A DNA stretch of 64,000 bases from Lepidodermella squamata. Its lineage: Eukaryota; Animalia; Gastrotricha. The DNA lies in assembly GCA_047495785.1 (NCBI GenBank), contig JBLDXI010000004.1, positions 1,240,001 through 1,304,000 of the forward strand, given 5' to 3'. The translations under genes and the position numbers were made by a program. Positions 3,825 through 62,397 of the stretch are shown piece after piece. The notes beneath the pieces were generated by a model that searched no databases, was not told where the DNA came from, and saw only the letters and a program-made list of their open reading frames with translations. The first letter of the stretch is position 1; each line of letters starts with the position of its first letter.

Positions 3825-5934
3825 TTATAGCGCAAAATCATCGATATTTGCGGCTTCAAACGGTTCTGGAGCGATGTCGGGGTTACCAACCAAAAACACA
3901 ACCTTTCGAGCATTTCGACACTTCGATTCACCGCTAAACGTAACATTTGCTGGGAAGCGCCTCTCAGTGTTGGCATCACACCCGACTGTGCTCGGTCGGC
4001 AGGTTACGGAACCGTCGGCAGTTCGCAAGCATCGATGCTGAGGGATCTATAAAAATATATTGTCAATTATGTATCGATCATATCATCATGAGGGGAATGA
4101 GGCCACTGAATAATACTGTTTTCCAGCCTATCCGGGGCGAGGCGGGTAATGAAACTGGCTTTTTCAGCGAATACCCATTTCAAAAACCGAATTTTGCAAG
4201 CCGAAATTTTCAATATTATCATTAAATTTTAATTGTACCACACTTTTGACGAAATTTCGCAAAATTCGTCAAATCTCACTTAACACTTTTAAACAGTCAA
4301 ATCGAATTTTACACGTGATATCATACCGCTGAGCGACGAGAAGACTACCCGAGCTGCCGGAAAACTACTGCCAGGTTATAAATAAACAACAATGAGGAAA
4401 GTTTGTGAAATTCGATTGATCGCAAAATGATGGCGAAAAGCCGTTAACTGATATGGCAGACGCAGTCTTTGCCCCCTGTCAAAATTAGTGAAAAATTACT
4501 AATGATCTACGAAATAGGGAACCCTGAAATCTTAAAATAAATGAACTCACAGGAGGCGATATATCATTCATGCATTTGTCGTAATTCAGCTGGAAAATCG
4601 CCAATTCCGAGAACAGCTTATTCTGATATAAAAAACATTTGATACCGGAAAAAACGCGTGCTTCTGATTGAGCGATACCTGAGATTGGTCCTGAGGACAA
4701 GCAGCATAGCAAGACAGACGGTTAGACGAATCCTTGCACGAAACGGCATTCTGTCAAACCAATGGTACATGCGAACGGTGAAATCGGGTCTGTTAACTTA
4801 CTCCAAGTAGACAAGATGCACGGTTGATATAGACTTTGCTGGAATATTGCTGAGTTTCATTGTTAGCAAGGCAGCCAGTGCTTTGAGGTCGGCAGTCGGT
4901 GAATTTGCTTGTTGTCGAATCGAAACATCGGATGTGCGGCTTCTCGGGGATCGGAACGGTAACTGCGAGTTGCAAAATATAGTTACTTAGTGGTACATGT
5001 TATGCTGTTGGTGAAATAATTGAACTACTTTATAAAATCATACAGCCAAGGTAAAAAACGAATTAAAATCCCCAGAATTCCGGATTACTGATAGCCATTA
5101 ATTATCTCGAATGCGGACGCCAAATTTAATTTGTCGTAATGTTAAGGTTTTATTGTTCCATATTGAGACTGAAAAGTTATCTTAGCCATTTGAAATCCTT
5201 AATTAAAACATCTGACTCACCCGCGGCGTTGAGGCACGACGTTAAATCTGAGTAAATCGTCGAATCGGTGACCTATCAGAGGAATAAAATATTGATATTC
5301 GCATTACATTAATACATTATATTGTACTCAGAATTCAAATGAAAATCAAAACATCAACCGAGAAATTGTTAATTTGACCTATTACCTTAAATCTAAAGTC
5401 TTAAGCAATCGAGAGTTTATAATGCGTTCTTGAATTGGAAGGGGAAAATACACCAAAACTTACCCAGTTTTCAGGGCACGTGTACGGATCTGGAACGCAG
5501 GTTTTGATGACGTTGCTCGACGTGCAACGTCGGAATTTCAATTTCTACGATGGTGGATCGGAAAATAGTCATGAGCACTGACAACAACAGCTTGGAAGTT
5601 CTTACATCGAATGCAGCTCGTTGCTTCTCACATTCGTTAAGGTTGTATTTTAAACTCAACGTCGCATTCTGATCGTTGAACCAGAACATCTGGAATACAA
5701 AAGTCATAGGACATCCGGGTGATGGGGAAAAAACACGAGATTTCGACGTACATTCATATCACCCGGGTTGTTGCATCCAACGTTTCCAGGTACGCAAAAC
5801 GGAGTAAGAGCCTCGTATTTGTAGCACATTCGGGCATTCTATAGACCGGGTAGAGTATTAATTAGCAAAAGGAAACTAAAAAAGAAACTGACCCCAGTGT
5901 TGCAGACGCCAGTTGTTCGAAAAATGCCGCCCCA
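3825..5934 (-). pseudogene. Family copy A: exons 2-10 only; exon 1 not found; CTLD missing
   Basis: Exons 5893-5934, 5752-5838, 5606-5689, 5464-5544, 5221-5272, 4802-4962, 4679-4750, 4551-4622 and 3825-4046 are all GT-AG and in frame. Exon 10 stops after module 6 (...NARKVVFLVGNPDIAPEPFEAANIDDFAL*). Intron 1 homology to copy D breaks near 5963. Confidence 0.8.
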
Positions 5935-8837
5935 CTAGTTGATGAAAAATTCATTAACCATCATACCCATCATACAACTATCATAGACAACACTTTAACA
6001 GATGGGAGATCCATTTATTTGAGCCGAATTTGCAAATGATCGTAAAGTCGTTCAAAAATCGCGAGAAAAAATCTCAAAAATGACATTTCATAAGAACTTT
6101 TTTACGCATACGCCCATCACATTTGGAAGAATCGGAGTCTCGACCCGTAGGCACCGTATCACGCCTCACCATTATGTCGAATTGCATTAAATTTTACATA
6201 CCCGAATTCTATATGAGAGGACCTTTGTAACGGTATAAACAATGACCTACTGGCTCCTGAATTTACTTAGCTAAATTGATGTTTCTAACAGAATGAGTAA
6301 AACTTTCTAAAATTAGAACCAAAAACCAAATTATTTACGCTGATTTATTCTGAGAAAAATAAGGGAGAATATTTATGACTCGTTGAATAATTTTTTGCTG
6401 TATAAAATTCAAAGTAAAATCATAGAAAAGTAATAAAATTTTGAACTGTTGAAAGATCGTGACACTAGTTATCGATATTCATAAACATCAAGTCTGTAAC
6501 TATCGGCATGGGTTGCCCATACGGTACTTTCGTGAATCTTGTCCTGTTGGCTTTGTAACATGCGTAAAAATGGTGCTTTTTCTATTTACAGAATATTTTT
6601 AGCTATAATCAAAGATTAAGGCCTAGGGCCTAGGGAGTTCATCTGCAGTTTAAAAAAGTTAATGTTTTTGGGAAAACATCTGGCGGGAAGGCTATTCCAT
6701 CTTGCGAAAATCTCACCAAGTCGTTGTAGTGGCTCAATCTCCGTATCTGGATTTCGTCGAACAGCACTTTGCCAAGGTGTTGACAAAACTACGCACCTGG
6801 TATTTGCGACGGGCAATCGAACCACGAAGCGTTCGCGTGTCCCTACTTGGTTCAAGGATTTCAAACCTCCCTGGTGTTCCCCGGCGTGCCACTATCCAGT
6901 TTTAAGTCATTATTCCAACACAACGCCGCATGGCCGAAGTCATAACAGCTGAGTAACAACTATTGTTGCTCTCGCCACTTTGTCGTTGATGCATGCCTCC
7001 ATCGACATTGCCGAATCCAGTTTCAGGCCAAGTAATGATGTCTGGCCAGTTTTGAACTGTTCAGATCCATCTTCCTCCGCTTAAGGCTGCCCAGCTTTCC
7101 TTCTGCCACATCGAAATCGAGGATATGAGAACCGCGTACTAATCCTTTGGTGTCCATGGAAACTCTGTGAGCCTGGGACCACCTGGTTGCTCGCTCTTCA
7201 CCCTTTTCCACATCTTCCAGCACCGGACCTCCGATGTTGACCTCATCAACATCATCGGCAAACGTGAACGCCTTTCTCGCTTCAAAATTATTGATTTTTT
7301 TTACTGTCCAGCAGAAAAGTGGCCAGTGACGAGTCCATACAGTATTAGTCCCAAGCCCAACACCCATTATAATTTTAATTAATTTCAGAAATCGACATCC
7401 CTTTTCTAATTTTTTGAGTTGAAGACAGCTCAGATTTCCAGATTTTTCATTTGCAGGAAAAATTTGCCATTCTTCTGCCGCGGTTGACTAGTCCCGGAAA
7501 TTTTTAAAAATAATAAAAATTTGGTTTTATGGTATTAAAAAAAACCCATGTTGAAATTGTCTCTATCCGACTATCTAAAATTCGCCCGGTAACTATTTTA
7601 TTTTGCGGGCTCTCTGAATAAAGCAACGCGGCGAAAGAATTTCACGACTATAGAATATCGGAAAATCAAAATAGAATGGTTATCGGGCAAATTGGATAGA
7701 GAAAATGTTCAAAATGGGTAAACTATTTTCTGTAGAATTATCAAAAATTGCCCGCCTCTCCGCCTCTTACTTGCACTATCGATACGATGAGCATGGCTCC
7801 ATCTTATTAGCACTAGCCTCTTGTTTCAATAGCCTTTATTATACCGTACTGCCCGGGTATCCCCTTCATTACCATATTTTTCATGCACAATTTACCAATC
7901 ATCATCGGAATTGCCCTGATTCCTGAGTTTTCATTTCATTTCGTTTCATTTGGAGCGTTCCCGAACGCCCCATACGTTTCACCCAACCGCGCACTCGCCC
8001 AATTTATTCGCCCAATTAATTTAAATTAAATTCCACGCACGTACACACGCATACAAGACACCGCGCTTTATTAAGATTCCGTATGAATCCGTTTTTCGTA
8101 GCCAAGACGACGAAGCTTTAATCTTCATTTCGGTACATTTCGTAGAAAGCGGCTGTCCATCTCGAGTCTTGATGAACTTCTCAATGTACTTAGCGATGCT
8201 TGGATCTTGATTTGAGGTCTTAGCGAGAGACGAGCGGCGAAAATATCGAGTAGATGATCGACTCTGTCTTTTGAAAGAGACATACGATCAGCAAAACGAA
8301 TGGTCAATAATATTGTATCTGTAAAACTGTAGACCACAAACCAATTCTGGCTTGATTTTCGCCCCGGGCAAATAAGTCCTTGTGTGTTCTCTTGAATTGA
8401 CGAATCCTATTTCAATAAACATTTCTGGCTTTGGTTGGAAGTTTTTGTAACTGATGCTCTTCTTCTTTGGAACTACATCCCGGCGCTGAGCAAAGGATGG
8501 TTGGAGATAAAGAAACGCACCCAATGCAAATTCATTGTAAGAAAATTCTAAAAGGGGAAACAATTACCGGAGTCATTGATTCTGGCGTTCGTCTCCGAAA
8601 CAGATCGTCTCCGAAAAATATTACCATCCTTACATTCATTTTATGAATTTTATAGCTCCCAAATTAAAAAATCGATAACAGTAATAGATTTTTCAGATTT
8701 ATTAAGCCGAGTATTATGCTTCGATAATTAGACACATTTTTGGTATATGACGTGAACACAATTATGTTATATTCATAAGTTGAATAGTTATTAATGAGTT
8801 TGGGCTTGACTGCAATGCGAAAACCAGTAAAATATTA

Positions 8838-8960
8838 GTCGGATCCAAAAAGTGGATCCAATTCTTGCGTCCAAAATCTGGATCCAGAATCTGGGTCCAA
8901 TATTTAGATCCAATTCTTAGAGCCAGAATCTGGATCCAATATTTGGATCTAAATATCGGA
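8838..8960. repeat. Imperfect short tandem repeat (TGGATCCAA-like units, about 10 nt)
   Basis: Repeated ggatccaaaa, ggatccaatt, ggatccagaa, gggtccaata and ggatctaaat units. Confidence 0.7.
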
Positions 8961-9024
8961 CTTAGACGTCGAAAATGGCACTTAAAGTGACTTGCTCGAC
9001 GACAATTTTCCCGGTTTTTTCATG

Positions 9025-9602: not shown

Positions 9603-10353
9603 TCGTGTTCGTCGTAAAATTATCTTCTATGTACCATCAACAAACTTCAGAGAACCAGCTCTGATTTCAAAAAATCGATCGAAGAAAAATCAACTTCTTT
9701 GTTTACTTTCCCACCGAAATTCGGACCTTTTTTATGATTCAGCTGAACATCTGCGACCCATGGTGTTCCGCTGTTTTCTCGTGAGTAGTCAGTCTATCTT
9801 AAATTATGTCTATGGTTATTGACGATTCTTACAGCTCTGTCTGATTTAAAAAGATCAGCTTCATGAAGTGTATTGTCCGAGGATCCACGCATTTTCTCGG
9901 CGATTTTCGCTCAAAAGCTATTCTTACTTTTGTACCTTTGATAGGCGAGGCTCGATTCGAGGAAAAATTGGCAAAAATGGATTTCTGTCGATTTATTTAT
10001 GAAATATTGCCGGATTCGTTTCAGGTTGAATTCTGGATTCATTCGGAAACCCAACGGGTGAGCACCTCGCCAACCGAAAACAGCGGAAATTAGACTGGGT
10101 AAGAAAAAATATTTCGTGGCGTGCTTGCCTCGACATTGCGGCACCCAACACAGCTTGAATAACATTTGCCGTTTATTGTAATTTGGCAGAATTTTTATAG
10201 AAAACACAGTGAAACATAATTGCATGCCTCGCCGGTTTATTTTCAAAAAATACCCCTTGTTATTGTTAGCATCAGTAGCTCATCGCGTAACATAAATTGC
10301 ATAACAAAAAAGGCTATCACTCGCACAAGCGGAAGCCTTTTAAATTTCATAAT

Positions 10354-10680
10354 ATGTTTCGCAAATTCCAATGCATTATTTCGAAGAATTTTCACAATCA
10401 TCCACATTCATCAAACACGTAGAACCGGAGTAAGAAACAATCCCACATCAATTAGGATTCGGAGTATAATCGGGCACAAATAAAGCTGGGTCATACGTGA
10501 AAGCGGAAACGTCTGCCCACTTTTGAACGCCAGCCTGCGGAGCCAGATCCACCCATGCAGTTTTGTTTTTTCCGATCAATCGTTCAATTAATGCTGCTTC
10601 GCTAGCCGATTTAATTGATGCGATAATCATAATACCATTATCCGCGCACCTCGCAGCAGACGCATAATTAAAAGTTGCTT
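10354..10680 (-). pseudogene. Orphan decayed CTLD exon (B/C/D clade)
   Basis: Translates as ...ARCADNG..IASIKSASEAALI...AWVDLAPQAGVQKWAD.SAFTYDPALF...PN*CGIV...C...K*CIGICETY, with in-frame stops. It is cut at 10681 by a repeat also present at 43003. Confidence 0.75.
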
Positions 10681-11167
10681 CACACTATCACAGTAGTATA
10701 GCGATTCTAGCCAAGATTCAAATTTAAATTTAAATAAGGATGATTCATTCGCCGATGCTCGAAACTATTTTTTATCCATCCGCGGAGCCTGAGCACAGCG
10801 AAGGTAGGTGCTTCGGCGTTGAGTTGAGACCTAATTTCGGAAACCATCAACAGAAATTTGATTGCAAACCAATTCTCCCATAACAGATTTCAGGGTTGGA
10901 AATCACCATGAAACAATTTTTGCGTTCAGACCTCTAAAACGAATTGGCTTAAGCCTTGCATTCTTTATCAAGTATCGTCAGCATCTTTTCATCTAGTAAA
11001 GTAATGTCCTTCACACGTCTTTACGAGTTGCTGGCCGCTTTGTCAGTCGTGGAAGACTTTTGACAAATAAGACAAATGAGGATGTTTGGATCGCCCAGGG
11101 CCCAGGCCCACACCGGCTTCTACAAAGCCAAACAAAGGGGTGAACAGCCGAAAACGTGGACAACTTA

Positions 11168-11555
11168 CCGTATATACCGATTTAGAAGGCTCTGCCTTAT
11201 AATTTTATCAATCAACCCTCAACCCTTGCCTTATAAACGAGACCTGCCTTTTATTTCGGCCCTGCCCTATATTGAAGTCAACTTTGAGTTGTTGCATGCA
11301 ACCGTTTTCAAGCCAAAAGCACTAGAAATCGGTATTTTCACTACTTATTAAGCGTTGATAGGATTGCAAGAAGAGTCTTAAGTGGACCGTGGACCCCGCA
11401 CATTTGCGCGATCCACGCGAGTTTTAACCCTAACCACTTGGGACATGCTCATAATATGGCGCCCTGCCCTGTATTATAAATTATTGAACTCGACGCCCTG
11501 CTTGTAAACGAGACTGCCCTTTGTTTTGGTTCTGCCTTCTAAATCGGTATACACG
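11168..11555. mobile_element. Tc1/mariner-pogo-type MITE (second copy at 14010-14397)
   Basis: TIRs CCGTATATACCGATTTAGAAGGC and GCCTTCTAAATCGGTATACACGG, flanked by TA on both sides. Confidence 0.85.
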
Positions 11556-11803
11556 GTAAGTATAGAAAATTTATAAGCGAAAAATCTGCTCGCCACGTGG
11601 CTAAATGCACGTAGCCTACATTTTATTACCAGAGCGTGGATCACCCAGCGTCATCACGGGAACATCACGGGAAAAAACAGGAGTAGAAGTAGAAACTTGT
11701 TTATTCTCAAAGCAATGAGGTTAATTTTACTTCTTCAAAGCAGCTCATCCTGAACCATCAACTTGAAGAAAGATAAGGCCAACATGAATTACTTCAATGA
11801 TCA

Positions 11804-13173
11804 TTATCTTTCAACATAGGTTTCGCAAAATCCGTACTTAGCAGTAACGGCGCAAAAAGTTGGAACCAAACGTAATACCGATGCTAGACTATTGTAGATT
11901 ATACAATTGTTATTATTAGGTTCAGCATAAAACAGAGCTGGATCGTATGTGAAAGCCGACCCGTCCGACCACTTAAGGACTCCTCCGGACTCATCTGCAG
12001 CAAGACCAACCCAGCCATTAATGGAGTAGCTTGCAATCACAGCTAGGTCGGCAGCCGTTTTAACAGTTGCCAAGATGCCATCCAGTTGCGAGCACTTTGC
12101 GGCTGCAGCCGAATGGTTCAAAGTACCGCTTGGGTTATTAACATAAAACACTGTCTTTCGAGCGTTTTGACACTGCGATTCGCCACTGAACGTAACATTT
12201 CCAGGGAAGCGTCTCTCAGTATCGGCGTCACAGCCGCTTGAGCTCGGTCGGCAGGTTGCTGAACCATCAGCAGTTCGCAGGCATCGATGGTAAGTGATCT
12301 ACAAACATAAATCAATCATGTTTAGCGTTGATCGCGAACTAATTAGCGATAATATGTTACTAAAATGATTCACGCAAAATAGAAGCGTTGATTACTACCA
12401 AATACCAAACCCTGAAATATTTAAGGAAATAAACTCACAGGAGGCGATATATCATTGATGCATCTGTCGTGATTCAGGTGGAAGGTCCCCAAGTCAGAGA
12501 ACAGCTTAACCTGTTATAGAAAAACTGTTGATTCCGGAAAAAGACGTGCTTTTGGTTGAGCATTACCTGAGTTTGATCTTGGAGGCAAGCGGCGTAGCAA
12601 GACGTTCGGTTGGATGAATCCTTGCACGAAACGGCATTCTGTTCAAAATATTAATGTGATTACCAAAAAGATAATTCGTTAGATCAAAACTTACTCCAAG
12701 CAGGCAGCTTTCCTTATTGATGTACACTCTGGTCGAGTACTGCCGAGTTTCGTTGCTTGCGAAGCAGCCGGAGCTTTGCAGTCGGCAGTCGTTGAACCTT
12801 TCGGTCGCAGAATCAAAGCAACGAATGTGCGTCTTTTCGCTATCCGGAACTGTGACTAATATAAACACAAATTTTAGCAGTTTTTTATCCGAATTCTTTA
12901 GTTTTTAGTTCAAGCACTAGGAACAAATTTGGAATTAACACACATCCAGGAAATTAGGATTGGCTTTAAGTCTCCACCAAGACAAAATTAATCCTACCTT
13001 CACTTCGGAAAATCGATATTGCACATAAATCAAAGAGGCGAAATGATTATAGGGTTTTTTAATCACGCCTAGGGCCCAGCTTCATCTGAATAAGAAAATG
13101 TTGATTAAGAAAATCATGAACCTTCTCCATTTGTACAAGCTGCGAGATTTGGATAGATCGTTGATTCAGTTAC
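11804..13173 (-). other. Family copy B: promoterless exact duplicate of exons 6-10 of copy C, lying downstream of C
   Basis: Exons 13122-13173, 12695-12855, 12567-12638, 12439-12510 and 11804-12298 are open with intact splice sites. The CTLD has WVGL, KWSDGS and EPN. Confidence 0.85.
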
Positions 13174-14645
13174 CTGTTGGCAAGAAACGATAAGAATATG
13201 TCACATGGAAGCTCACTTTCTTGAAGTCAACATGCAGCGCAAAGTTTATATACCCAGCGTCACCCAGCGTCATCACGGGAACATCACGGGAAAAAACAGG
13301 AGTAGAAGTAGAAACTTGTTTATTCTCAAAGCAATGAGGTTAATTTTACTTCTTCAAAGCAGCTCATCCTGAACTCAACCTGAGCCAGATCCACCCATGC
13401 AGTTTTGTTTTTTCCGATCAATCGTTCAATTAATGCTGCTTCGCTAGCCGATTTAATTGATGCGATAATCATAATACCATTATCCGCGCACCTCGCAGCA
13501 GACGCATAATTAAAAGTTGCTTCACACTATCACAGTAGTATAGCGATTCTAGCCAAGATTCAAATTTAAATTTAAATAAGGATGATTCATTCGCCGATGC
13601 TCGAAACTATTTTTTATCCATCCGCGGAGCCTGAGCACAGCGAAGGTAGGTGCTTCGGCGTTGAGTTGAGACCTAATTTCGGAAACCATCAACAGAAATT
13701 TGATTGCAAACCAATTCTCCCATAACAGATTTCAGGGTTGGAAATCACCATGAAACAATTTTTGCGTTCAGACCTCTAAAACGAATTGGCTTAAGCCTTG
13801 CATTCTTTATCAAGTATCGTCAGCATCTTTTCATCTAGTAAAGTAATGTCCTTCACACGTCTTTACGAGTTGCTGGCCGCTTTGTCAGTCGTGGAAGACT
13901 TTTGACAAATAAGACAAATGAGGATGTTTGGATCGCCCAGGGCCCAGGCCCACACCGGCTTCTACAAAGCCAAACAAAGGGGTGAACAGCCGAAAACGTG
14001 GACAACTTACCGTATATACCGATTTAGAAGGCTCTGCCTTATAATTTTATCAATCAACCCTCAACCCTTGCCTTATAAACGAGACCTGCCTTTTATTTCG
14101 GCCCTGCCCTATATTGAAGTCAACTTTGAGTTGTTGCATGCAACCGTTTTCAAGCCAAAAGCACTAGAAATCGGTATTTTCACTACTTATTAAGCGTTGA
14201 TAGGATTGCAAGAAGAGTCTTAAGTGGACCGTGGACCCCGCACATTTGCGCGATCCACGCGAGTTTTAACCCTAACCACTTGGGACATGCTCATAATATG
14301 GCGCCCTGCCCTGTATTATAAATTATTGAACTCGACGCCCTGCTTGTAAACGAGACTGCCCTTTGTTTTGGTTCTGCCTTCTAAATCGGTATACACGGTA
14401 AGTATAGAAAATTTATAAGCGAAAAATCTGCTCGCCACGTGGCTAAATGCACGTAGCCTACATTTTATTACCAGAGCGTGGATCACCCAGCGTCATCACG
14501 GGAACATCACGGGAAAAAACAGGAGTAGAAGTAGAAACTTGTTTATTCTCAAAGCAATGAGGTTAATTTTACTTCTTCAAAGCAGCTCATCCTGAACCAT
14601 CAACTTGAAGAAAGATAAGGCCAACATGAATTACTTCAATGATCA

Positions 14646-17600
14646 TTATCTTTCAACATAGGTTTCGCAAAATCCGTACTTAGCAGTAACGGCGCAAAAA
14701 GTTGGAACCAAACGTAATACCGATGCTAGACTATTGTAGATTATACAATTGTTATTATTAGGTTCAGCATAAAACAGAGCTGGATCGTATGTGAAAGCCG
14801 ACCCGTCCGACCACTTAAGGACTCCTCCGGACTCATCTGCAGCAAGACCAACCCAGCCATTAATGGAGTAGCTTGCAATCACAGCTAGGTCGGCAGCCGT
14901 TTTAACAGTTGCCAAGATGCCATCCAGTTGCGAGCACTTTGCGGCTGCAGCCGAATGGTTCAAAGTACCGCTTGGGTTATTAACATAAAACACTGTCTTT
15001 CGAGCGTTTTGACACTGCGATTCGCCACTGAACGTAACATTTCCAGGGAAGCGTCTCTCAGTATCGGCGTCACAGCCGCTTGAGCTCGGTCGGCAGGTTG
15101 CTGAACCATCAGCAGTTCGCAGGCATCGATGGTAAGTGATCTACAAACATAAATCAATCATGTTTAGCGTTGATCGCGAACTAATTAGCGATAATATGTT
15201 ACTAAAATGATTCACGCAAAATAGAAGCGTTGATTACTACCAAATACCAAACCCTGAAATATTTAAGGAAATAAACTCACAGGAGGCGATATATCATTGA
15301 TGCATCTGTCGTGATTCAGGTGGAAGGTCCCCAAGTCAGAGAACAGCTTAACCTGTTATAGAAAAACTGTTGATTCCGGAAAAAGACGTGCTTTTGGTTG
15401 AGCATTACCTGAGTTTGATCTTGGAGGCAAGCGGCGTAGCAAGACGTTCGGTTGGATGAATCCTTGCACGAAACGGCATTCTGTTCAAAATATTAATGTG
15501 ATTACCAAAAAGATAATTCGTTAGATCAAAACTTACTCCAAGCAGGCAGCTTTCCTTATTGATGTACACTCTGGTCGAGTACTGCCGAGTTTCGTTGCTT
15601 GCGAAGCAGCCGGAGCTTTGCAGTCGGCAGTCGTTGAACCTTTCGGTCGCAGAATCAAAGCAACGAATGTGCGTCTTTTCGCTATCCGGAACTGTGACTA
15701 ATATAAACACAAATTTTAGCAGTTTTTTATCCGAATTCTTTAGTTTTTAGTTCAAGCACTAGGAACAAATTTGGAATTAACACACATCCAGGAAATTAGG
15801 ATTGGCTTTAAGTCTCCACCAAGACAAAATTAATCCTACCTTCACTTCGGAAAATCGATATTGCACATAAATCAAAGAGGCGAAATGATTATAGGGTTTT
15901 TTAATCACGCCTAGGGCCCAGCTTCATCTGAATAAGAAAATGTTGATTAAGAAAATCATGAACCTTCTCCATTTGTACAAGCTGCGAGATTTGGATAGAT
16001 CGTTGATTCAGTTACCTGTTGGCAAGAAACGATAAGAATATGTCACATGGAAGCTCACTTTCTTGAAGTCAACATGCAGCGCAAAGTTTATATATACAGT
16101 GAAACCCCGATTTGGCGTCATCTACGGGCCGGCCATAAAATCGGGCGGGAAATCCGAAAAGACGGATAATCCGGGTCAATTTACATGCAATGCTATGCTG
16201 CGGGGAAAAATGAAGATTTTTCATCCCCTTATCTTTTGCATACCCGGATTTCTCGTAGACGGAAAATAAAAGGACGCCAAATCGGGGTTTCACTGTATAT
16301 TCTTGAAGCCCACGACTTCCCCTTTCCAACAATTTATTAATTTCAAAATTTCGCTGATTACGTAACATTCATGACGCTAAAATCGATCGATTTAGCTAAT
16401 GTTTGATCAGCTGCAAGCAATCACCTGTTACGTACCCCTAAAAAATTCCTTAACCCGTATTAGCCGAAACACACGCCCGTGTGTAGCAATTTTAAAAAAT
16501 TGCAGAAAAATAACAGTGATAGTTGTAGTTAAAAAAAGAATATATTCTGGTTCCTCATGGTCTTAACTATGTTAAAGGAATTTTTAGGATTTTTTCGTCA
16601 ATTGTTGTCATGGAGAAAATATTACGCAACCGTTACACACTTGGCTGGTCGTGAAAAAAACAGTAGTCGCGTGTTTTTTTCGACCTGGCACGCGATGGCC
16701 AGTAGTTTGTGGCCTGAAAAGCTTTTGTAATTTCATTTTCCAGGTCTTAAGCTATTTATTAAAAAAAAAATTACTATCATAGTGTTCACCGACTTAACGG
16801 TATTAATTTTTAAAAAACACCACACACCGGTGTGTGTTCAGGCACAAAGTGAACTATTCAAGAATATCATATTTTTACTATAACACCGCTATAACCTCGA
16901 ATTGATGATCACTTATGCTTGGATTCCACCAAAGTAAGCCTGGGGATCAAGATTCTACAGTTTCCGGACTTCCATGCGCCTCACATTGCTAAAAAACAAA
17001 ATATGTGCATTTTTTACGTCTAAAAAACGTGCTTAAATGGAAATTACTCCAGAATGGTCGCCGACTGTCGCAAAATGCTTTCAAATTATTGTTGGTCAAT
17101 GTTTATGCGATAACGTTACGCATATTTGTGAAGCCTGATGGTCATCCAACATGTCCCACATAAAAAACAAGCGTAAAAAATGAGAGGTCAAAAAGTTAAG
17201 TTTGGTTTTTTTGGAAAAATTTCATGGAAATTGGAAGAGAGCATGTTGAAATGACCTAAACTACATTTTTCCGCACAAGAATCCTCCACATTGGCGAGAT
17301 TTTACATTTTTTGTAAAAAAAATTGCATTTTTTCGGGCAGCGCATTGCGCCTGGACACACACCGGTGTGTGGTTACGTAACTCCGTAACGGTGCATGATA
17401 AAAATATACGGTTTTCAGATTTGGAATCAGCGTTAAAAGTTACACTAGAATCTCACGTCAAAATAATTTTCACTAATCGGCATCTAGGGTCAGGTTTATA
17501 CGGGTTAATTATGAAAGTTCCTGGATGATCATGTTCTGCAATTTACTACTCGAAATGGAAAACTGCAAAAATATCAGGGTTTTCGCCGCGTGAAACCGAA

Positions 17601-47700: not shown

Positions 47701-50239
47701 AGCGGAATCGGTTTCTTTTGAAAAAGATGAATGGCGCATGGTTGTTAACTCGATTGAAAATTACGAATTCTATACAAAAAGCAGAATCCTCGACTGTGGG
47801 GGTGGGTGAGGATCATTCTTCGCCTGCCTTCGCCCTCTTCAAAGCCGGAAACGGTACACGACGCTCAGTCCCGAAGAGGATAAATAAAAACATTATTATT
47901 ATTATTATTATTGTTTATCAGTCACGGTTCCTGTGAGCGAGAAGCCGCACATCCGCTGCTTCGACTCGACAACTGGCAAATTCAACGCCTGCCGGCCACA
48001 AAGCACTGGCTGCTTGGCTAACAATGAAACTCAGCAATATTCGACTAATGTGTTCATCAACTATCAAAGCTGCCTGCTCGGAGTAAGTCTTTTCTAATTT
48101 ACTCGCGTTTGATGTCTAATTTTGTATTTAAACAGAACGCAGTTTCATGCAAAGATTCGTCTAACCGAAGTTCATGCTACGCAGCCTGCCCTCGAGATCT
48201 CTCGCAGGTTAAACTTGGTTATTGAAAACTCGCAGATCAAAGTTTCTATGAGTAATCCTAAAACAGGTTAAGCTCTTCGCGGACTCGCAATCTTTTCAAC
48301 TGAACCACGCCAAGTGCACCAATGAGATATCGCCCAAGGTGAGTTCGCATTAACTCGAAATCACGAATGTCGCCAGCTAGTTGCAAGTTCAACTGAAATT
48401 ACATTTTATGGCTTAGGGCCTAGTTTTAACCTTGTGGTTTGATGGTATGGCGATAAGTTGATAGTTGATCAGTTTAGCCGTGGTCATAAAGTCTTTAAAG
48501 TCATTATACCCTGTTATATGCTGCTATTTGATCTGCTAGCGATTATCAATCGAGTTAACAATCATGCGCCATTCATCTTTTTCAGAGGATGAGAGTTCAG
48601 CTAATTGTAAATCAGGAATGATTTTGGTTTCAAATTTATTTTTGCCGGGTTTTTTCTTATCACCTTTTTTCTTAGTAACCTTATCCTTTTTGTCTTTCTT
48701 ATTGTATATTTCTTTTTCCGGCGTATTTCCTTATTGAGTCATACTTTAATCAAACTCCGTTAATCCACCTGGGTCTTCCTCTGGGTCTTCCTCTGGGTGC
48801 AAACCACCCGAACGGGGGCATCCAGGTATACATTTTATTTATTCGACCTTCTTCGTCGTAATCACGTGACCTAACAATATGTCCCAAGTATCTTAAGCGT
48901 TGTTTTTCGACAATGCGACTCACTTCAATGAGTCCTCCGCATAGAGCGATATCAATATTTGGAATATAGTCCTAGGTCCATTAGGACTCCTACTATTGAT
49001 CGAAGCCAACGATACTCTATATTGTATTCAGCCTATTTTCTTGGACTATCGAGATGTTCCACGATTCACAGGCGTAAATGACACGCAAGTTAGGACCTTT
49101 AATTTTGTTGATGTGAAAAGCTGATTCTTGTTGCACATAAACTTATTCATAGCAAATACACTACCAACTACCAGCCTTAGAAATCCTGAAATCCATATTC
49201 CAACCAACGATAAATAACCAATACTTATTATTAAGAAATGCCACCTAAACTGAAATAAATTTATTCATATCTCTGTGTCTTGAAGGCAATGTTACTTGGA
49301 ATTACCATAAACTACAGTTTAAAGGCCGCATAATGAATAAAGGCCGCACCCGAGTAATCGCCGCAAAAACACCCCATTTTCAACAATTTGGCAATAATAA
49401 AGGCCTCAATGAAACACCTGGGGTGACTCCGAGCAGACGGATTATCCACACTTCTTAGCAAATATGTAAACTCATCGCGCTAGCTGCAGATCTTGATTAC
49501 AGTGAAAACCGGCCTCTCGCGCACCTGTTACACCCGTTAGTAGTGAATAAACTGCTAGTTCGGCGTGACGGCTGAAAATTCAAGAAAATAAAGGCCGCAC
49601 TCGAATAATCGCCGCATTTTTCACCCCTTTCTGAAAAATCAGGAAAATTAATCGCTCTCTCTCTCTAGTGCCTATTTTTGAGTTCAAATAAAATCGAGAA
49701 AACATAAAATGTTACTTACATGCATATTTTAGCCGCCTGCGTTTTTCCGCTGCGTCGACAACGGCGATTTAGCGGTTCATTGCGTCACCGAGTCAACAGG
49801 CTGCAATGCGGCAACTCAGCTTCGAATTCCGGCTAATGTGGTCTATCCGGACGAGAACACTTGCATGAATGCGACCAAGAAGTACACGGTGGTGGCTTAT
49901 TGGGGTGTCAGAGCTGACAGCGCGGCAAAATGCCCCGAAATCAATGCTACGTTGGCGACGATTCGGTCTGACGCTGAGCTGGCTGCGGCTAAACAAGTGC
50001 TGACGGCGACGGGGGCTGTTAGCGCTTGGATCGCTCTCACTCACCAAAACGGCGAATTCAGATGGGATGATGGATCGAGTTTCACTTTCGTCAACACGCA
50101 GTGGGCTTCTGTTTATGACGGCTGTGTTAGTCTCCAGTCCCTCCTCGCCGTTATGGATTTTGTCCCAGCCAATGGTTATTACTATAAATCCGTTGCGTGT
50201 GAAGCCTATGCAGACTCAGCGTTGTGCGAGTCGTTTTAG
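44760..50239 (+). CDS. Family copy H: secreted six-Cys-module plus CTLD protein, about 440 aa, 10 exons
   Basis: Exons 44760-44924, 44988-45029, 45087-45173, 45270-45353, 45412-45492, 45555-45606, 47922-48082, 48136-48207, 48267-48338 and 49733-50239. All are GT-AG and the frame is open. Confidence 0.88.
46351..47910 (+). mobile_element. 5'-truncated RTE-type non-LTR retrotransposon with an open RT frame, in intron 6 of H
   Basis: RT motifs QFGF, FIDLEKAYD, GLRQGCPLSPLLF, FADD and FKYLGS, plus an RTE-like tail RGRPRTRW. The 3' end is (TTA)n. The 10-bp TSD TTGTTTATCA lies at 46341-46350 and 47911-47920. Confidence 0.92.
48540..49190 (-). mobile_element. Decayed antisense copy of the same RTE-type LINE family in intron 9 of H
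   Basis: Reverse-complement similarity to about 47090-47760 (e.g. tgtttttcgacaatgcgactcacttcaatgag). Confidence 0.85.
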
Positions 50240-53109: not shown

Positions 53110-53897
53110 TCATTTAAGTCTCCGAGATTTCGCCTTTGAACTTTTGAGCAACTTTTGAGCCAGACGGCGCTTCTGAGAGCTTGTCGGCATGTGTGTTGAA
53201 GCAGCATCCGAAGGGCGAGCTGCCGCAATCAACCAGCTTGAAACAGATGTTCTGCCCCGCTTTCCGACTTGCTGCGGGCGGGAAGACCCGGTCGCGTACT
53301 TCCGTCTTCCGGTTGCCGTCGGTTGAACTCGAATTCTCGCCCCTATTCTATGATCATTATGTTTCGAAGAGCACCTGGCAAGAAACGACTCCAAAGAGGC
53401 CGAGCCCATGGCGGCAGCTTTGATAGCCTCAGAGCAAACCGCTCCACCTGGTGATTTAACGTACTGCTGGAAGATGCTTGTACTAAATCGGCTACCTTCC
53501 CACATGCAACGTTGAAAGCTGATAATGTAGATTCGTACTCTACAACATCTTCACCAGGAGCCAAGTCGAGGCAGCAGTCTTCGGAGATGGGACCGGTATT
53601 GCTGGCAATGGAAGTGACAGCAATTTTGTAGGTTGTGCATTCATCAGCGAAGAATGAGATTTCCGGAGCACTGCCAGTTGCGATAATGGACAACAGCTGA
53701 AGGACTTCAGGCTCTCCAATTATCATATAGTTCAGAGGCAAAGGGATTTCATGATCCTTCGCTAAGGACATTTGATGCTTGCAAATGCGACCACTCAGAC
53801 CATATGGACATGAACAGAGCCAGGAATTCAAATCAACCATGTACACATCACCATTTCCAGTAGTAATTTCGAACTTGTATGTTTCAAATTCGAACAA
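53110..53897 (-). mobile_element. Fragment of a Mutator-like (MULE) transposase C-terminus with a SWIM zinc finger
   Basis: YMVDLNSWLCSCPYGLSGRICKH is a CxC-x7-CxH SWIM motif. The frame shifts into a basic tail. Confidence 0.7.
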
Positions 53898-56784
53898 AAT
53901 TAATCATTCACAGTTTAATCGATAAACGATGTTCCATAACCGATATTCCCAGTATATTAACTGATGTGCTCATCGTGTTCAGCGCCTCAGATTACCCTAG
54001 ATCTCGCATATCTCTACGAAATTCGAAAAAAATAACGGAATTATCGCAAAATCAAAATTCGATTCCGGTTTTTCAATTGCTGAGCGTAAGCTTGTAAAAA
54101 ACTATTTTAAAAGGAATCGGCACAACCGCGTCTTTTGATCTCTAAATCCCCTTTGATCGCGAAATCGATTGATTTCGTGGCAAAAACTAAAATTGTTGGA
54201 TTTGTCAGACAGATTGTGAGACGCCGAACGATGCAAACACCGGTTTTGTTTCAGTATGCCTCTTGTTAGCGTCCTTGAATAAATGGTTTTACGCTGTTTA
54301 CGGCAAGTTAGTAATAAGTTCCACGTAAAACGTGGCGTATCCTTCTTTTAACAATATTAATCTAACGTAATTCGAAAAAATCCTGAGGGTTTTCACTGTC
54401 AAAAATGATCTCAGTGCACTTGATTAGGCACACGATTGATGCGATTGCGGAATCACCCTTCAACCAGTGTGGGCTGACTTGAAATAAAACACTGACAAGC
54501 CAAAAAATGTCAACCAAAAACACGTGATTTTATTGAAGATGATACACAGTAGAAAGTGTGCCTCAAGCAACCATTATTTTCACTTAAATACGGCGTCGCG
54601 ATTCAATTTTTCATTCACTCAATTTTTCTCTACAACTTTTTTAGCGAATTAAAGTTTATTGTTCCGGGCAATAAAATGGTTTCTTATCACCTTGCTATGC
54701 TGCTGGCTCTAATGCTATCTTCAAGCGAAGTCGTTCGTGTTGCGACGTAAGAGACCTCGTTAGGCAGTACTTTCATGCTGTTTGTAATAAAATATTTGGT
54801 ACTGGTATAGCTACTTTTTATTTGCCGGTAATAGCATCATTATTGCGGCGCATCCGATACCGAGCGGTTACAGCGCCTACCAGAATGCTTACTGCGCACA
54901 AACGCTTCAGATAATTTCTCCGTTATCATGGCTAAATTCTTAAGATCAACCAAATTTATCCCTATCTTCCTTATTTCATAATCGTTGCCTTCGAGCGTAG
55001 TCTAGGATAATTCTATCAATTTTTCTCAATATTCATAGGCTAAACTCATAGGGTAAACTCTCTCTCTCTCTCTCTTATGTTCCACTTATTGTTCAAACAT
55101 GACCAGAGTCTGCGTTTGAATGGGCATAATTGTATAGTTTCCCATTCCCGGAGAATTTCCCTGGAATCATGGACTAGCTGAGCCAATGTTTCTACTATTC
55201 AGCCCTTAAATCATGAAACTGCTAATAAAGCACTTATTACGCTATTGGTTTTAGTATAATTGGTGGTTATCCTTCTCCATTATCTCGCAGACATTTGGAT
55301 ATCCATCTTAAATTGTTCGCTTGAAAAAGCGATCACATCTTTTTCTGATCAATCGAATTTCATGTGTATCAAATATGAGCCGTTGATTTGTTGCAACAAA
55401 CTGAACTAAAACCTTGCCCGAAGCTCGCGGAATCGCTGAGATTTGCAGCCACATGAGGTCAATAGTAGAATCTCACGAAGTTGGTAGCATTGAAGAATTG
55501 CTAGGATGACTTGTATTCCTGAATCCTGAGAAAGATAGCGGATTGTCTTGATAATGTGATCTGGTTAGCGATTTAGCGATGATTGATGATTAGCAATTAG
55601 AAACGAAACCGCCGTATTTGAGGAATGCTTGACATGCAACTCGCTTGACATGATTCGTATACGACAAAACGTGACCCACCATTCAAGTTTGGGATTCACG
55701 ATTTTTGCGCGGACTTCTTACGGAAATACTACGTCACATTTATTCTGATGGTGCCGAACTGACGGCCAAATATCGCGGATTAATACTAATACCAATAGTA
55801 TTTATCAAAGAAAACAATTATTCGCAGAAGAATAATTTACAAAGCGCATTTACAACTCGATCATTTTGGCTGGAATCCTAAATCCTATCTATAATTAGGG
55901 CTATCAGGAATGCTTATACGGCACTTCAAACCGATCTATTGGCGAGAATGCAGATTAATTCAGAGGGTTTCAGAGTAAGTGAAGGCAAAAAAGTGACACG
56001 TACTTTATGCTGAGAATGGGCTAAGGGTGTTAAGGTAGCGATGGAGCGATGGAGCGATTTGTTCTACGCTTCGCAAGGCTAAATCAAAGCGCATCAATCT
56101 GATCTGCTCTGGGTTAGTATTGAAATTTAACACGTAATTAATGGTCAATAGATATGGACATTCTTTGTTTTGAAGGGGAAGAAAACAGCTAAACCAAAGC
56201 AGTCAAAGTAGGATGAATTACCATGAATTACGTAGTCGTTAGCGTCGCTGAATAACTCGAATTCGGGCTTGTTCACGTCACTTAGAGACAGTTGACGGGT
56301 GACAAGTTTGCTTTCCCTTTCATTCACATATAAACTCTGCTATTACCTTCAGTCCCATTTCTGTGGTTTGCCAATTTTTTTAGTTAGTTTTAGTGAGATA
56401 ACCAATGGAGTATCGGCGTCATCGATTCTTGAAAATTACTAGTTCATTTCGGTTTTAAGTGATACATTTTCAGAAATCTTTACAGACCGCTTGTTTCCTA
56501 ATTGCGACACTTCAAAGATCCGCTAAAACTTCCATGGACGAGATCTACTTCCAGTAATATTACGTGTTCGCAAATATCATTCTATAATTTATAGTAGAAT
56601 CAAAGGAATTTTTTTAGAATGGCTCATTCTAAAATAGCTAATAATGATTCATTACTATCTTATTGCAATATCTCCCGAAGCTATCTAATTGCACTAATAG
56701 TACAGTAATACATCCAATTAGCTGCTGCATTAAATTTTAATTTCTGCATTGTTGATAGGATTATTTTACTTAACCGAACCACTA

Positions 56785-57760
56785 ATGATCGACGCCAACA
56801 CGTCCATCCCTGCCCTCCAACCCGGCGAAATCATCAAATATTCTCGGCTTCTCGGCCCAGACCTACTTCGTTGCCGCATCGGCTATCAGCAATCTGAACT
56901 TGAATAAGCTTGTCGCATGCACCTGGCTTCGCGGAGATCAAAAGCTCACGCTGCTGAACCAGTAAGTTTGGCCAACCCTCGTGTACCCTCTACAAACCGC
57001 ACCGCTGAACAAGCTGCCGCGATCATTCCTGGAGGATGTGGACAAGATAGTCAGATCAGCCGTGAAGGATCCTGCCAACCCCGACACCCGACGCATTCCT
57101 GTACGCCGCCAGGCGCTGCCGCGGACTCGCAATCGTGCAAGCATCGCGAGAGGCGTTCATCCGACACTACGCCATCTGCATGAAGCTTGCCTCGCTCAAC
57201 AACGACCAACTCGACTTCTGCAGAGATTTTGAGGCCTGAAGGAGCTCGACATCGATTCGAGAAAGCTGACCCTACCCGACGACCGCCAGGCAACGAGCCG
57301 CGATCTCAGGAAACCGAAACGCGATTCGTGTTTTAAGGAGTGGTGTTCGAAACCCACAGGTGAGGGCGCTGTGTGATTCAAAGAATATCCCGCGGGTAAC
57401 AACCTGATCCTGAATAAAACCGGCCGCTCGTCGAGCAAGTACACCTGCGCACTTAAGATGACGGTGAGATCTGTGTCAGTGAGAAGCAGTAAGTTGGCTG
57501 CAAGCGACGGGACCGCCACTGCGGTGCTGAGAAAGAAATTCTTGGTCATGTCCTCGGCGCTTGTCATTTCAACTCGCTAATGATCACCAGTCGTCATGAT
57601 AAAATCCGCTCGATGATCGCTACGGCACTACGGAAGAACGGGATGAAAGTGCACGAGGAAGTCGCGGTAAAGGGTAAAGGAGACAGACGGTGCGTGGAGA
57701 CGAGTCGACATCATCGCGTACGATCCGAGGACGAAGGAGGGAAAATTATACTATTGCTGA
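56785..57760 (+). mobile_element. Degenerate fragment of an R2/NeSL-like (restriction-endonuclease-like) non-LTR retrotransposon
   Basis: Frameshifted segments include YPLQTAPLNKLPRSFLEDVDKIVRSAVK, a decayed CCHC motif (..LGHVLGAC) and RHDKIRSMIATALRKNGMKVHEEV..VDII. Confidence 0.65.
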
Positions 57761-59056
57761 GTGCTGGCTCTTCCAATATTATTCAACCTGTTATCGCCAT
57801 TTCTGTTGAAACAAAGTGTGATAAATTATTCTCTTGGTTCCATTTCATTTGTTCATTTTCAATTATTTCGCTGCGTTGAAAATAAAGATGTACTGCACCG
57901 GGTCACGGATAATAATAATTTTTCATTTGTCACGGCAGCTCGTTTTTGCTACCTGTAAAATCTTCAATCGAAGAATTGTAGAAGAGCGCGAGAAAACTCC
58001 GAAGAATTACAGTAAGGATAGGCGAAGAAGATGAATTTATCTTCTTTTATCTTCAAGAGTCCAAGAACGCAAGATAGCAATCGCAGCTAATGGCAATTTT
58101 ATAGCCCTTGAACCGAAGATAGTAATTTGGGATGCAACCGCTCCACAGTTGTAAACAGCCGCAATATAGCCATATAATGATTTATAGAAATATGCGCTAG
58201 CACTGGCGGTCTCTTACATCGCAACACGAACGATGTTGCTCTAGGTAAAGAGAAGAACTGGGTTCGATGCTTCTCGCTGTTGAAAACTCGCGAATAAATG
58301 TTCCTATAGGCATGATTCTAAAACAGGTTAAGCTCTTCTCGGACTCGCAATCTTTTCAGCTGAACCACGGCAATTGCATCAGTGAGATAACGCCTAAGGT
58401 GAGTTGGCATTAACTTGTCCGCAAGGTCGAATGTCGCCAGCTAGTTCAACTGAAATTACATTTCATGGCATGGGGCCTAGTTTCAGGCATTTGGTTTGAT
58501 GGTATAGCAATAAGGCAATCAGTTTAGCTTCAAGATTTCCCGACTTCAATCGGACAATCGATGCAAGATGAGTTGTGTTCCATGATTAACGTGATGTTCA
58601 TATAGCTTAAATTTTCAATTCCCAAAAACTGAAAGATCTGAAAGATAGTCCCCTGGCTGTCAATATTTTCAATGTTTAGACGTTGTTTATTTTTTTGATT
58701 AATTGAAAATCAGCAACAACAAAAATATGATTCATTTTGTGAGTCTAACGGGAGAGAAAGAGAGGCGTGGCGTGAGGGGCGTCACTTGGCTTTATTACTA
58801 TCACTTCAAAAGAATCAAGAGACCATAAAATGTTACTTACTGTCCCATGTAAATTTTAGCCGGCTGCGTATTTCCGCTGCGTCGACAACAGCGACGGAGC
58901 AGTTCATTGCGTCGCTGAGTCGAGAGGCTGCAATGCGGCAACTCAGCTTCGAATTCCGGCTAATGTGGTCTATCCGGACGAGGTCACTTGCAAAAATGCG
59001 ACCAAGAAGTACACGGTGGTGGCTTCTCCGGGTAACAGAACTGTCAGCGTGGCGAA

Positions 59057-61392
59057 CCCGCACAGAAAAAACTGGGTGGAAAGACGACATTTTTACATGG
59101 CAGATTGTTACATGGTCACTTCAGAAGTCACTTCATCTGGTTTCAGCTAGTTACATGAAGCTAGCTGTGAATTTGTTACATGGAACAATGCGCGTTTACA
59201 TGTAGCATTACTAATACTGGTTCCACCATCATTCCACCCTAGCTACTGATGTTAAAGAGACGACCGAAATGTTTCTGACTCAATTTATTTTATCCTTTTG
59301 TAGGTATTTATACTTCAGTATGAATAGATAATGTTAATGGTGTCGGTTACACGGTCAACAAGTTAAGCGTCGGTTTCATGGTTGAATAAGATTAATGCGC
59401 GTATGTCGCGCCGGTTGAACTCATAATATCAAAGAGCAAATTGCATACTCAATAGCGTGCAACATCAGCTACACCTACTTCCACCGCCCAGTTCTACTTC
59501 TTGTTTCCACCCGATTTGAAGAAAAACGAGAAGTCCGTTTGCAGTTTTGTTTCTTAAGCAAAGCACATGCCTGATAAACACAAGTCGAAGACAGCTATAC
59601 TCAGTAAATCAGGATAACAATTTAGACTTGAGCACCAACATAAGCACCATTCATACACCAGGACATTGGCAAGAGTGAAATTAAGAGCGCAAAAAGACAT
59701 TCAGAAATTTTGAAGAAATTCCTGGTAAATGTTAACAAGAAGAAGACTAAGAAAATAGGATAGAGAGAATAAGTAAGTAGAACGAATATGCCGTTTAACA
59801 GATTGACAAACATATTCAGAACATTCAAAACATTCAGTGTTTGCGTCGGCTTCGTCCCCTTGCTTTCTGGCTCTCCAGTCGCAATTTTTCTCGAAAGCTC
59901 TCGCATTTTCAGCTGCTTGCTTCTTGATCTCCCGAATTTCCGTAGTCGATAATTCAGGCTCTTCTCTTTCCGTAGTTTTCACATGGGTAGCTCTGCCACC
60001 TTTCGACACCATAGAAAGTTCATCTGAAACGAGCCGATACTTTTCTGTATTCACAAAAATTCTCCGAGAAAAGTCACTAACATTGTGGAACCACTGGTAA
60101 GTTGAACTTTGGCGCGCACGCTGATTGGTCAATTTATCGTTGCTAATGACTCCGGAATGAAACATTTCTGTCGTGCAATCCACTAATAAATTATTTTTTA
60201 TTTATGTAAAAAATGACCTTGCCACACGCTCTGCACGGTTTCCAATGACCACGAGCGTAAACTCCATATTAATTGTGGTAAATCGCTGCGGCAAAAAACA
60301 CTTGTTGCAAAAAATCTTATGGATCGCACGACTGAACGTTTCATCCGGGAGTCATAGCAACGATCGATTGACCAATCAGCGTGCGCATTGGATTGGACTT
60401 TTAAGTGGTCACACAATGAACCTTTGCGCCAACACCTCGAAATTTAGGACAAATCTTCGCATGAGGAATCAAACTGCTTGGTCTCACAAAAATGTAACAT
60501 GCATTCTATAAAGAACATTTATTGAAAATTGCATAGGAAATAAAAAATAGTCATTTGAGACAAGTTTGAGACAAGTTTGAGACAAGTGAGGTTGCAAACA
60601 AGTTGTGACAACATCATAGTAAATTCTGACGCGTGCAACTTATTTTGCTAAGTTCACATTTTTGAATCAAACGGACCTCGGCGCGGTGTCACTTGCGGAC
60701 GGGCACGTTGATGCTCAGGCTTCAACAGTAGAGCGCATGCTAATATTGGGTGAGATGCGAGATGTAAAGACGACAATGTTCCATATTATTCCTAATTGTT
60801 CCATGTAAGCAAGACTTCATGTACTCACACGTGTAAAAATTGCGTAGTTACATGTTATTTTTTGGGTGTATAATAATAATAATAATAATAATGGTTTTAT
60901 TTAGTCCTCCTATCGATTAAGCATCTATACCGTAATAACGGTTTTGAGGAGGGCGAAGGCAGGCGAAAGATGGAAATCACCCACCCCCACAATTGAAGAT
61001 TCTACTTTTTCCAAAAAATTCATAATCATTCATTGAGTCAACAATGTTGCGCCATTCGATTTTATCAAAAGATAGTAATTCAGTCAATTGCAGATCCGGA
61101 ATAATTTTAATTTCGAATTCATTTTTGGGTGTAATCTTTTGAATTTTTGAATTTTTGGGTGTAATCTTTACAAAATTCCAGCTGGTTTTAATTTAACCTT
61201 TTTACATGTAAAGTCCTCACTTTACATCGTCGAATTTCCGCTCAATTCCATGTAACTTCTTGGAAGCGCGACATTATTGCATGTAACAACAATCGCCATC
61301 TTCTTACATCCACCATTACATGTCAGAATTGCGTCCTTTCATGTAAAAATGTCGGATTTACAGCTAATGAAACCCAGTTTTTTCTGTGCGGG
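59057..61392. mobile_element. CMC/EnSpm-like TIR element in exon 10 of I, with a nested MITE and a nested short LINE
   Basis: Perfect 21-bp TIR CCCGCACAGAAAAAACTGGGT and 2-bp AA duplication. Nested: MITE at 60081-60418, and a minus-strand RTE 3' end at 60871-61121 with a (TAA)n tail and TTTTTGGGTGTA TSD. Confidence 0.85.
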
Positions 61393-62397
61393 AAATGCGC
61401 CGCAATCAATGCTGCGTTGGCGACGATTAGGTCAGACGCCGAGCTGGCTGCTGCTAGTCAAGCGCTGACGGCGGCGGAGGCTGATAGCGCTTGGATCGCC
61501 CTCACTCTCGAAAACGGCGAATTCAAATGCGATGATGGGTAAAGTTTCACTTTCGTCGCATCGCAGTGGTATGGTGGCGATGGCAATTGTGGTTTTCCCG
61601 TATTTTTAATCGCCAAGTATCTTGGACTCCCAGTCGATGGTTAATACTATAGGACCAATTTTTGTAATATGGCGCTAGCGACGCTGTTTTATGCAAGTCG
61701 TTTTAGTGGTCCACTTTCCCTATGGACAAAGCCTTGTGAGATTGCCGTAAGAAGCCGAAGTAAAATAATAAGATAATGTTGCGGAGATTACAGTGCTCCC
61801 CCGATATCTGCATGGCGGCCGGGTCCAGGGTCGTGCAATTATCGAGGGAGACAGTTAACGGGGGCTGTAAATGAGTCAGGGATTAAGTTTGAGCGAGTTG
61901 CTAGCCAGATGGCGCTGAGCAAACAGTTAACATGGCAACGCGTCAACGATTTTTTTAACTATAACGCTGTCTTTTTATTGCTTAGCTGCAATTCGCTAGC
62001 CGGGAAGAGTTGGATGAATGGCAAATGTTCAAGTTTGAAGTAATCTTTTGCGCAGAGAGGGCTGATTAAGTTTATATCAATTCCTTAAATGAACCGAATC
62101 CGAAAGCAACGCCTTTGCGGGCTATTTTTTAAGGTGGGCTGTGCTCTTGTTCCTACCTACCAGTAATTTATTCACCGCGGCATCATTATCTCTCTGTCGT
62201 GCTGGTTGTTCGATATTTCTGTCTCATTTCTCGTTCGCGTTGTAAAACACCTCTGAGATTTGTAATTTGTACGTGGCCGAGTTATCAACGATGTGGAAGA
62301 GGTTATTTCAACCTTCAGTTCAAACTCTGCCATATAACTCTAGTCATAAATAAATTGTATTATCCATCTTCTTGTTCGGGCAAGTTAATTTTTCTAA

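Follow-up and report, generated by a model that had tools for sequence, protein, structure and literature searches.

The gastrotrich Lepidodermella squamata carries a cluster of nine related genes in which a conserved stalk of small four-cysteine modules is joined to a highly variable tip ending in a C-type lectin-like domain (CTLD). The cluster extends from position 3825 to 61706 of the stretch analysed here (the window), which is 64,000 nucleotides of contig JBLDXI010000004.1. Stalks and tips have been exchanged between copies at the level of exons, and the stalk module has no relative that our sequence searches could detect. Judging from their sequences, the genes may encode secreted soluble recognition proteins, such as lectin-like agglutinins or opsonins, a reading that we place at about even odds (roughly 0.5).

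Gene structure, splicing and protein anatomy

A preliminary description of this DNA had reported nine copies, five of them intact, with ten exons and a set of conserved scaffold motifs. A six-frame motif scan of the window recovered all of the quoted motifs within the cluster, in several copies and on both strands. Mapping the exons of every copy, with the minus-strand gene c3 as template, confirmed the count and the span: c2, c3, c4, c6 and c7 have open ten-exon frames and the other four copies are broken. When spliced, the five intact copies encode proteins of 432-445 residues with one stop each, at the terminus. Their introns, mostly 47-100 bases long, are GT-AG throughout except for two GC-AG introns in c6. 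The GC content of the window is 41%. The exons are short, as the preliminary description had stated in explaining why the family escapes a list of open reading frames (ORFs), with the correction that exon 10 does appear there as ORFs of 110-178 residues.

Two public sequencing runs cover the region, one of DNA and one (X1) whose contigs are only probably RNA. The X1 contigs are restricted to exons, with zero depth in the bins of intron 9 and of intergenic DNA, and their joints match six of the nine introns of c3 (1, 2, 3, 4, 7 and 9) to the base, which bears out the splice junctions proposed earlier. The joints are direct at introns 2 and 7 (CT..AC; 55 and 58 bases), and those at introns 1, 3, 4 and 9 fit after counting the in-between letters (8, 3, 1 and 14, respectively). 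One X1 contig of 670 bases connects exon 7 to exon 10, with a gap of 154 bases, 10 more than exons 8 and 9 together. Since the X1 contigs are mostly 82-95% alike to the window, they are mostly from paralogues, and therefore support the family's gene structure, not the expression of each copy. From the DNA run, 921 contigs align to the region, where depth is not a measure of copy number; their number points to many further paralogues elsewhere in the genome. Contigs of this run agree with the window without differences. X1 contigs at 20108 and 24640 match module 6 and then continue into unrelated sequence, which suggests that paralogues with other tips are expressed from elsewhere in the genome.

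Each intact protein consists of an N-terminal hydrophobic leader, called from hydropathy alone, followed by six four-cysteine segments and one terminal CTLD; N-glycosylation sequons are present, and there is no membrane span after the leader. Hidden Markov model (HMM) scores and predicted fold place the terminal domains in the CTLD superfamily. The Lectin_C HMM gave 33.7, 33.8 and 23.1 bits for c3, c4 and c6, passing the gathering cut-off of 22.6, and the top Foldseek matches to the predicted structure of exon 10 were all CTLDs with a probability of 1.0. Four cysteines are invariant among the domains, which also have the core W-[IV]-[GA]-L / W-x-D-G-S in common. In C-type lectins, EPN marks specificity for mannose and QPD that for galactose (PMC514892). 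Among the five intact copies, EPN is found in the CTLD of c2 only, and QPD and WND in none, so by motif the domains do not appear to be classical Ca2+-dependent C-type lectins.

The modules resemble one another beyond their cysteines in four pairings (1 with 4, 4 with 6, 3 with 6 and 1 with 3), each of which beat 40/40 cysteine-fixed shuffles. A common origin of the modules is favoured because a phase-0 intron is similarly placed, 4-7 codons past the third cysteine, in modules 1, 2, 3 and 5. Origin by duplication of a triplet has partial support, in that modules 1 and 4 and modules 3 and 6 beat all shuffles, while 4 and 6 are equally strong and the pair of 2 and 5 is not significant.

Tip variation, recombinant copies and decay

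Identity between intact copies is 56-87% in modules 1-5, 32-76% in module 6 and 23-46% in the CTLD. Module 6 is encoded together with the CTLD in exon 10, and the boundary between the constant and the variable part is intron 9, not the edge of the CTLD. The view of a conserved scaffold with a variable lectin is upheld insofar as the tip is far more variable than the stalk, and has to be revised for module 6, which varies with the CTLD.

Exon 10 falls into two classes, A (c1, c2 and c3) and B (c4 to c8), with only 41-50% DNA identity between them over module 6 and with saturated synonymous sites (proportion of synonymous differences, pS, 0.84-0.91 in exon 10). In exons 1-9 of the same A/B pairs, pS is 0.49-0.65 and the ratio of nonsynonymous to synonymous substitution rates (dN/dS) is 0.13-0.21, indicating purifying selection. 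The history of exon 10 is therefore older than that of the stalk to which it is attached. Where it could be measured, dN/dS of exon 10 is 0.2-0.65. In known CTLDs the C-terminal half holds the ligand loop, and it is this ligand-side half that diverges fastest here, with a ratio of nonsynonymous to synonymous proportions (pN/pS) of 0.6-1.0. Between c5 and c7, identity falls from 84% in module 6 through 81% in the N-terminal half of the CTLD to 45% in its C-terminal half (pN/pS 0.76); between c2 and c3, the corresponding values are 75%, 50% and 34% (pN/pS 1.04). The pattern of the tip fits diversifying selection without proving it.

Copies in the cluster are mosaics. In c5, exons 1-3 are 91-97% like c3 and exons 4-10 are 80-97% like c7; informative sites divide between c3 and c7 as 29:2, 10:0 and 8:3 in exons 1-3, and as 3:11 to 1:30 in the later exons. 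In c2, the informative sites of exons 2-7 lean to c6 and those of exons 8-10 favour c3 (2:20, 5:10 and 3:65). Maximum chi-square values were 118.7 and 64.3, with 0/500 permutations in both c5 and c2, and in approximately unbiased (AU) tests the tree of each region was rejected on the other regions. Comparison of these sequences thus identifies recombination between paralogues as a major source of variety. The exchanges appear to be old events rather than chimeras of amplification, because the halves are 80-97% like their donors, not 100%, and have insertions of their own.

Intact paralogues stand beside pseudogenes in the cluster, and the live copies are under purifying selection, as in a birth-and-death multigene family (Table 1). 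The four broken copies, the relics and the transposon insertions agree with the birth-and-death process that had been suggested earlier. The upstream regions of c7 and c8 (44237-44815 and 54166-54731) share 91% identity along about 570 bases, which makes c8 a decayed recent sibling of c7. A segment of 2.7 kb containing c2 exons 6-10 and part of a CTLD relic is present twice (10540-13252 and 13382-16094) with no differences in the core, as the result of either a very recent tandem duplication or an artefact of amplification or assembly.

Several mobile elements lie in and around the copies. Exon 7 of c5 contains an insertion of 339 bp (33342-33680) that ends in inverted repeats of 7 bp and has duplicated its TA target; it looks like a miniature inverted-repeat transposable element of the Tc1/mariner type and has a relative at about 60080-60386. 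The reverse-transcriptase ORF of a long interspersed nuclear element (LINE) in intron 6 of c7 is 555 residues long (46142-47809, plus strand; RVT_1, E 7e-29), and an inverted relative of its 3' part (74%) lies in intron 9 of the same gene (48542-49188). Adjoining the truncated end of c1 is an intronless ORF of 631 residues (1592-3487, plus strand) with no Pfam match, which by eye resembles a DDE-type transposase. Two minus-strand stretches (53110-53897 and 62398-63015) are, also by eye, candidate fragments of a Mutator-like element (MULE) SWIM zinc finger and a pogo/Tigger-like transposase. At 8841-8953 there is a 13-bp tandem repeat of about 9 copies with higher-order periods of 26 and 39 bp.

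Table 1. Copies, parts and relics of the family in the window
Feature	Position	Strand	Description	Basis
c1	3825-5934	-	Broken, class A; exons 2-9 open, exon 1 not found, exon 10 cut short after module 6	
Relic	10346-10675	-	Decayed class A CTLD with stops	
c2b	11804-13173	-	Exons 6-10 only, within the duplicated 2.7-kb segment	
c2	14646-18755	-	Intact, 437 residues; mosaic; class A exon 10; sole CTLD bearing EPN	
c3	19688-22145	-	Intact ten-exon gene, 432 residues; class A exon 10	Exon mapping and junctions
c3 exons 1-5	22145-21981, 21914-21873, 21817-21731, 21649-21566, 21504-21421	-		
c3 exons 6-10	21174-21123, 20825-20665, 20606-20535, 20478-20407, 20167-19688	-		
c3 CTLD	19691-20029	-	C-type lectin-like domain	Pfam Lectin_C, E 6e-8; C-type lectin fold by Foldseek
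c3 module 6	20030-20167	-	Example of a folded module (predicted): beta(3-8), beta(14-18), beta(28-30), helix(40-45)	AlphaFold2
Relic	23721-23810	+	Exon 7 (module 4)	
c4	24269-26592	-	Intact, 437 residues; class B exon 10 despite c3-like exon 8	
Relic	28351-28640	+	Rearranged exons 2 and 3 and part of exon 1, with stop	
c5	about 31493-36121	+	Broken chimera of class B; exon 7 split, exon 9 interrupted, exon 10 open	
c6	38699-42421	-	Intact, 445 residues; two GC-AG introns; class B exon 10	
Relic	43759-44055	+	Decayed class B CTLD	
c7	44760-50239	+	Intact, 440 residues; class B exon 10; LINE reverse-transcriptase ORF in intron 6	
c8	54676-61706	+	Fragmented; class B	
c8 exon 1	54676-54732, 58226-58281	+	Pieces	
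c8 exon 9	58327-58398	+	Piece	
c8 exon 10	58860-59039, 61393-61706	+	Divided by insertion	

The four-cysteine module

That the scaffold could not be assigned to a known domain, as first noted from the sequence, still holds after searches of Pfam, the PDB and protein and metagenome collections with exons and modules. Pfam was run on single exons (1, 3, 4, 5, 7 and the CTLD exon) and on 19 module sequences; only Lectin_C matched, apart from a chance match to CHCH at E 0.04, and the module belongs to no Pfam family (not CW/PAN_3, CUB, vWA, EGF or similar). Sequence searches of the PDB with module profiles gave no match. A word-indexed search of 5.8 billion clustered proteins with profiles of exons 7 and 10 returned none, a weak blank as such a search sees only proteins of similar length. 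HMMER with a general module profile against 1.84 billion representative proteins gave 60 matches, 57 of which were to the cysteine-poor tail of the profile only; the six matches inspected were BspA-type leucine-rich repeats and other repeats summing tiny scores, and the four-cysteine pattern was in none of them. Metagenome contigs contained no relative of the module, and searching the ESM Atlas by features gave unnamed weak clusters only. No such family is described in the literature searched, and lectins go unmentioned in the genome paper of L. squamata (PMC11660948). As far as the searches reach, the family would be restricted to its lineage.

Given module 6 by itself and 19 in-window rows, AlphaFold2 predicted a beta-beta-beta-alpha fold of 46 residues with a pLDDT (predicted local distance difference test) of 89, and the same layout is seen for module 6 in the exon-10 model. 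Extending this model, which was made for module 6 only, we predict that each module is a 45-residue beta-beta-beta-alpha domain, presumably with two disulfides. The best matches among solved structures are all MbtH-like, covering 41/46 residues with a root-mean-square deviation of 1.5-2.0 Å and a template modelling (TM) score of up to 0.70, at Z values of 3.3-4.9 that are below the trust level of the tool. The Atlas structures add matches at TM 0.63-0.66, to small proteins of bacteria and to a cluster labelled Ribonuclease HI (0.63), and viral structures gave no significant match to the module model.

The predicted topology is shared with MbtH-like proteins (PF03621) and with the N-terminal domains of RNase H1 and ribosomal protein L9. 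SCOP puts MbtH and the L9/RNase H1 N-domain in one fold. Unlike the module, these proteins are cytoplasmic and lack its cysteine pattern, and the PF03621 signature (conserved tryptophans, S-x-W-P and P-x-G-W) was not found in the module. Aligning the module with MbtH, for which the comparison set was a narrow one of enterobacterial YbdZ, gave an hhalign probability of 0.5% and z of at most 1.0. Descent from MbtH has no support in sequence, with an identity of 5-17% and no profile signal. Because Z lies under the trust level and the sequence signal is absent, we read the likeness of the predicted fold as a common small topology, that is, as an analogy and not as homology. Kunitz/BPTI domains share with the module a beta-hairpin followed by a C-terminal helix with an aromatic-x5-Cys pattern, but have six cysteines, whereas the module has four with different spacing. 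An origin from Kunitz/BPTI was rejected on a Z of 2.3 over 31 residues, a TM score of 0.33, the four cysteines per module and the lack of a Pfam or PDB sequence match.

Possible function and significance

How might such proteins work? We argue that modules 1-5 could make up a conserved stalk whose partner is constant and may be the protein itself, mucus or matrix, or a cell receptor. Exon 10, with module 6 packed on its CTLD, would then be an exchangeable cassette for binding foreign surfaces, e.g. those of microbes, probably without classical Ca2+-dependent sugar recognition. The ligand loop of the cassette would diversify, and new combinations of stalk and tip would keep arising in the germ line through duplication, unequal crossing-over or gene conversion, and decay. 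Three observations weigh against these proposals. Sugar-binding motifs are scarce in the five CTLDs (EPN limited to c2, QPD and WND in no copy); the likeness of modules 2 and 5 to the other modules beyond cysteines is not significant; and pN/pS in the tip is never clearly above 1, so that the values do not demonstrate positive selection and relaxed constraint would account for the divergence of the tip equally well.

Many CTLD proteins are matrix or biomineral proteins, and it is possible, if somewhat unlikely in our judgement, that the family supplies structural or adhesive material secreted as cuticle, mucus, egg coat or glue, where the CTLD would cross-link endogenous glycoproteins, the stalk would serve as a rigid spacer, the copies would provide dosage and the tip would drift under relaxed selection. 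Disulfide-rich proteins with N-glycosylation sequons, non-canonical CTLDs and a tip pN/pS of 1 or below are consistent with such a role, as is the very large size of the family suggested by the 921 aligned DNA contigs. It explains less well why the CTLD has diverged mainly in its ligand-side half instead of evenly, and why two old classes of tip have been retained and shuffled onto shared stalks. Recognition of non-self could also serve nutrition or control of the microbiome rather than defence, with lectins in feeding or in the gut lumen that sort or agglutinate bacteria or particles. Gastrotrichs eat microbes, and mucosal C-type lectins sort particles in bivalves. The signature expected of feeding lectins is identical to that of soluble recognition proteins, and sequence cannot separate them from immunity; we consider this role improbable.

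It is very improbable that the mosaics and the cluster itself are artefacts of assembly, e.g. uncollapsed haplotypes or chimeras that arose when the genome was amplified. For L. squamata, the published assembly was built from DNA obtained by multiple displacement amplification, with about 3% suspect reads (PMC11660948), and the exact 2.7-kb duplicate also speaks for an artefact. Against this, the halves of c5 and c2 are similar but not identical to their donors and carry their own insertions, about half of the synonymous sites are different from one paralogue to another, and the contigs of the DNA run fit the window without differences. Only c2b may be an artefact.

Among known systems, the layout recalls the VIgL family of snails (FREPs, CREPs and GREPs), whose immunoglobulin domains are topped by a head of the fibrinogen, galectin or C-type lectin kind and which bind proteins and surfaces of parasites, and in which the CREPs of Biomphalaria glabrata end in a C-type lectin (PMC5433772). 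Both are secreted multigene families with an N-terminal repeated scaffold and a C-terminal lectin domain. The VIgL scaffold is made of one or two immunoglobulin superfamily (IgSF) domains, whereas the present one has six 45-residue modules with four cysteines and a beta-beta-beta-alpha model; somatic diversification and parasite binding belong to the VIgL side of the comparison. No IgSF domain was matched by Pfam in exons 1, 3, 4, 5 and 7, and the module model is a 46-residue beta-beta-beta-alpha fold. Since it has no immunoglobulin domain, the family is not a member of VIgL, and the comparison with FREPs and CREPs drawn in the preliminary description stands as an analogy of layout without kinship. 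The terminal CTLD is shared, by HMM and fold, with the CTLD superfamily (PF00059) and its lineage-specific expansions in invertebrates, e.g. nematode clec, from which the family differs in an accessory module that matches no Pfam family and in the near absence of Ca2+/sugar motifs.

By analogy with the snail system, we tentatively propose, at well under even odds, that the module is an undescribed extracellular domain, a disulfide-stapled version of an MbtH/L9-like fold, with the role that immunoglobulin domains have in VIgL: a standard stalk for recombined, exchangeable heads. The family would then be an independently evolved, germ-line-shuffled immune repertoire in a phylum without described immune genes. 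Among invertebrates, lectin heads that vary on a constant stalk are a familiar arrangement; here, the stalk domain is without a detectable sequence relative, and the copies directly show that exons have been shuffled. Should the proteins be structural, the family would be lineage-specific and of modest interest. Should the tips bind microbes, the family would represent a convergent route to a diverse repertoire in a phylum that has hardly been studied, with a new small disulfide domain that deserves to be defined and to have its structure solved.

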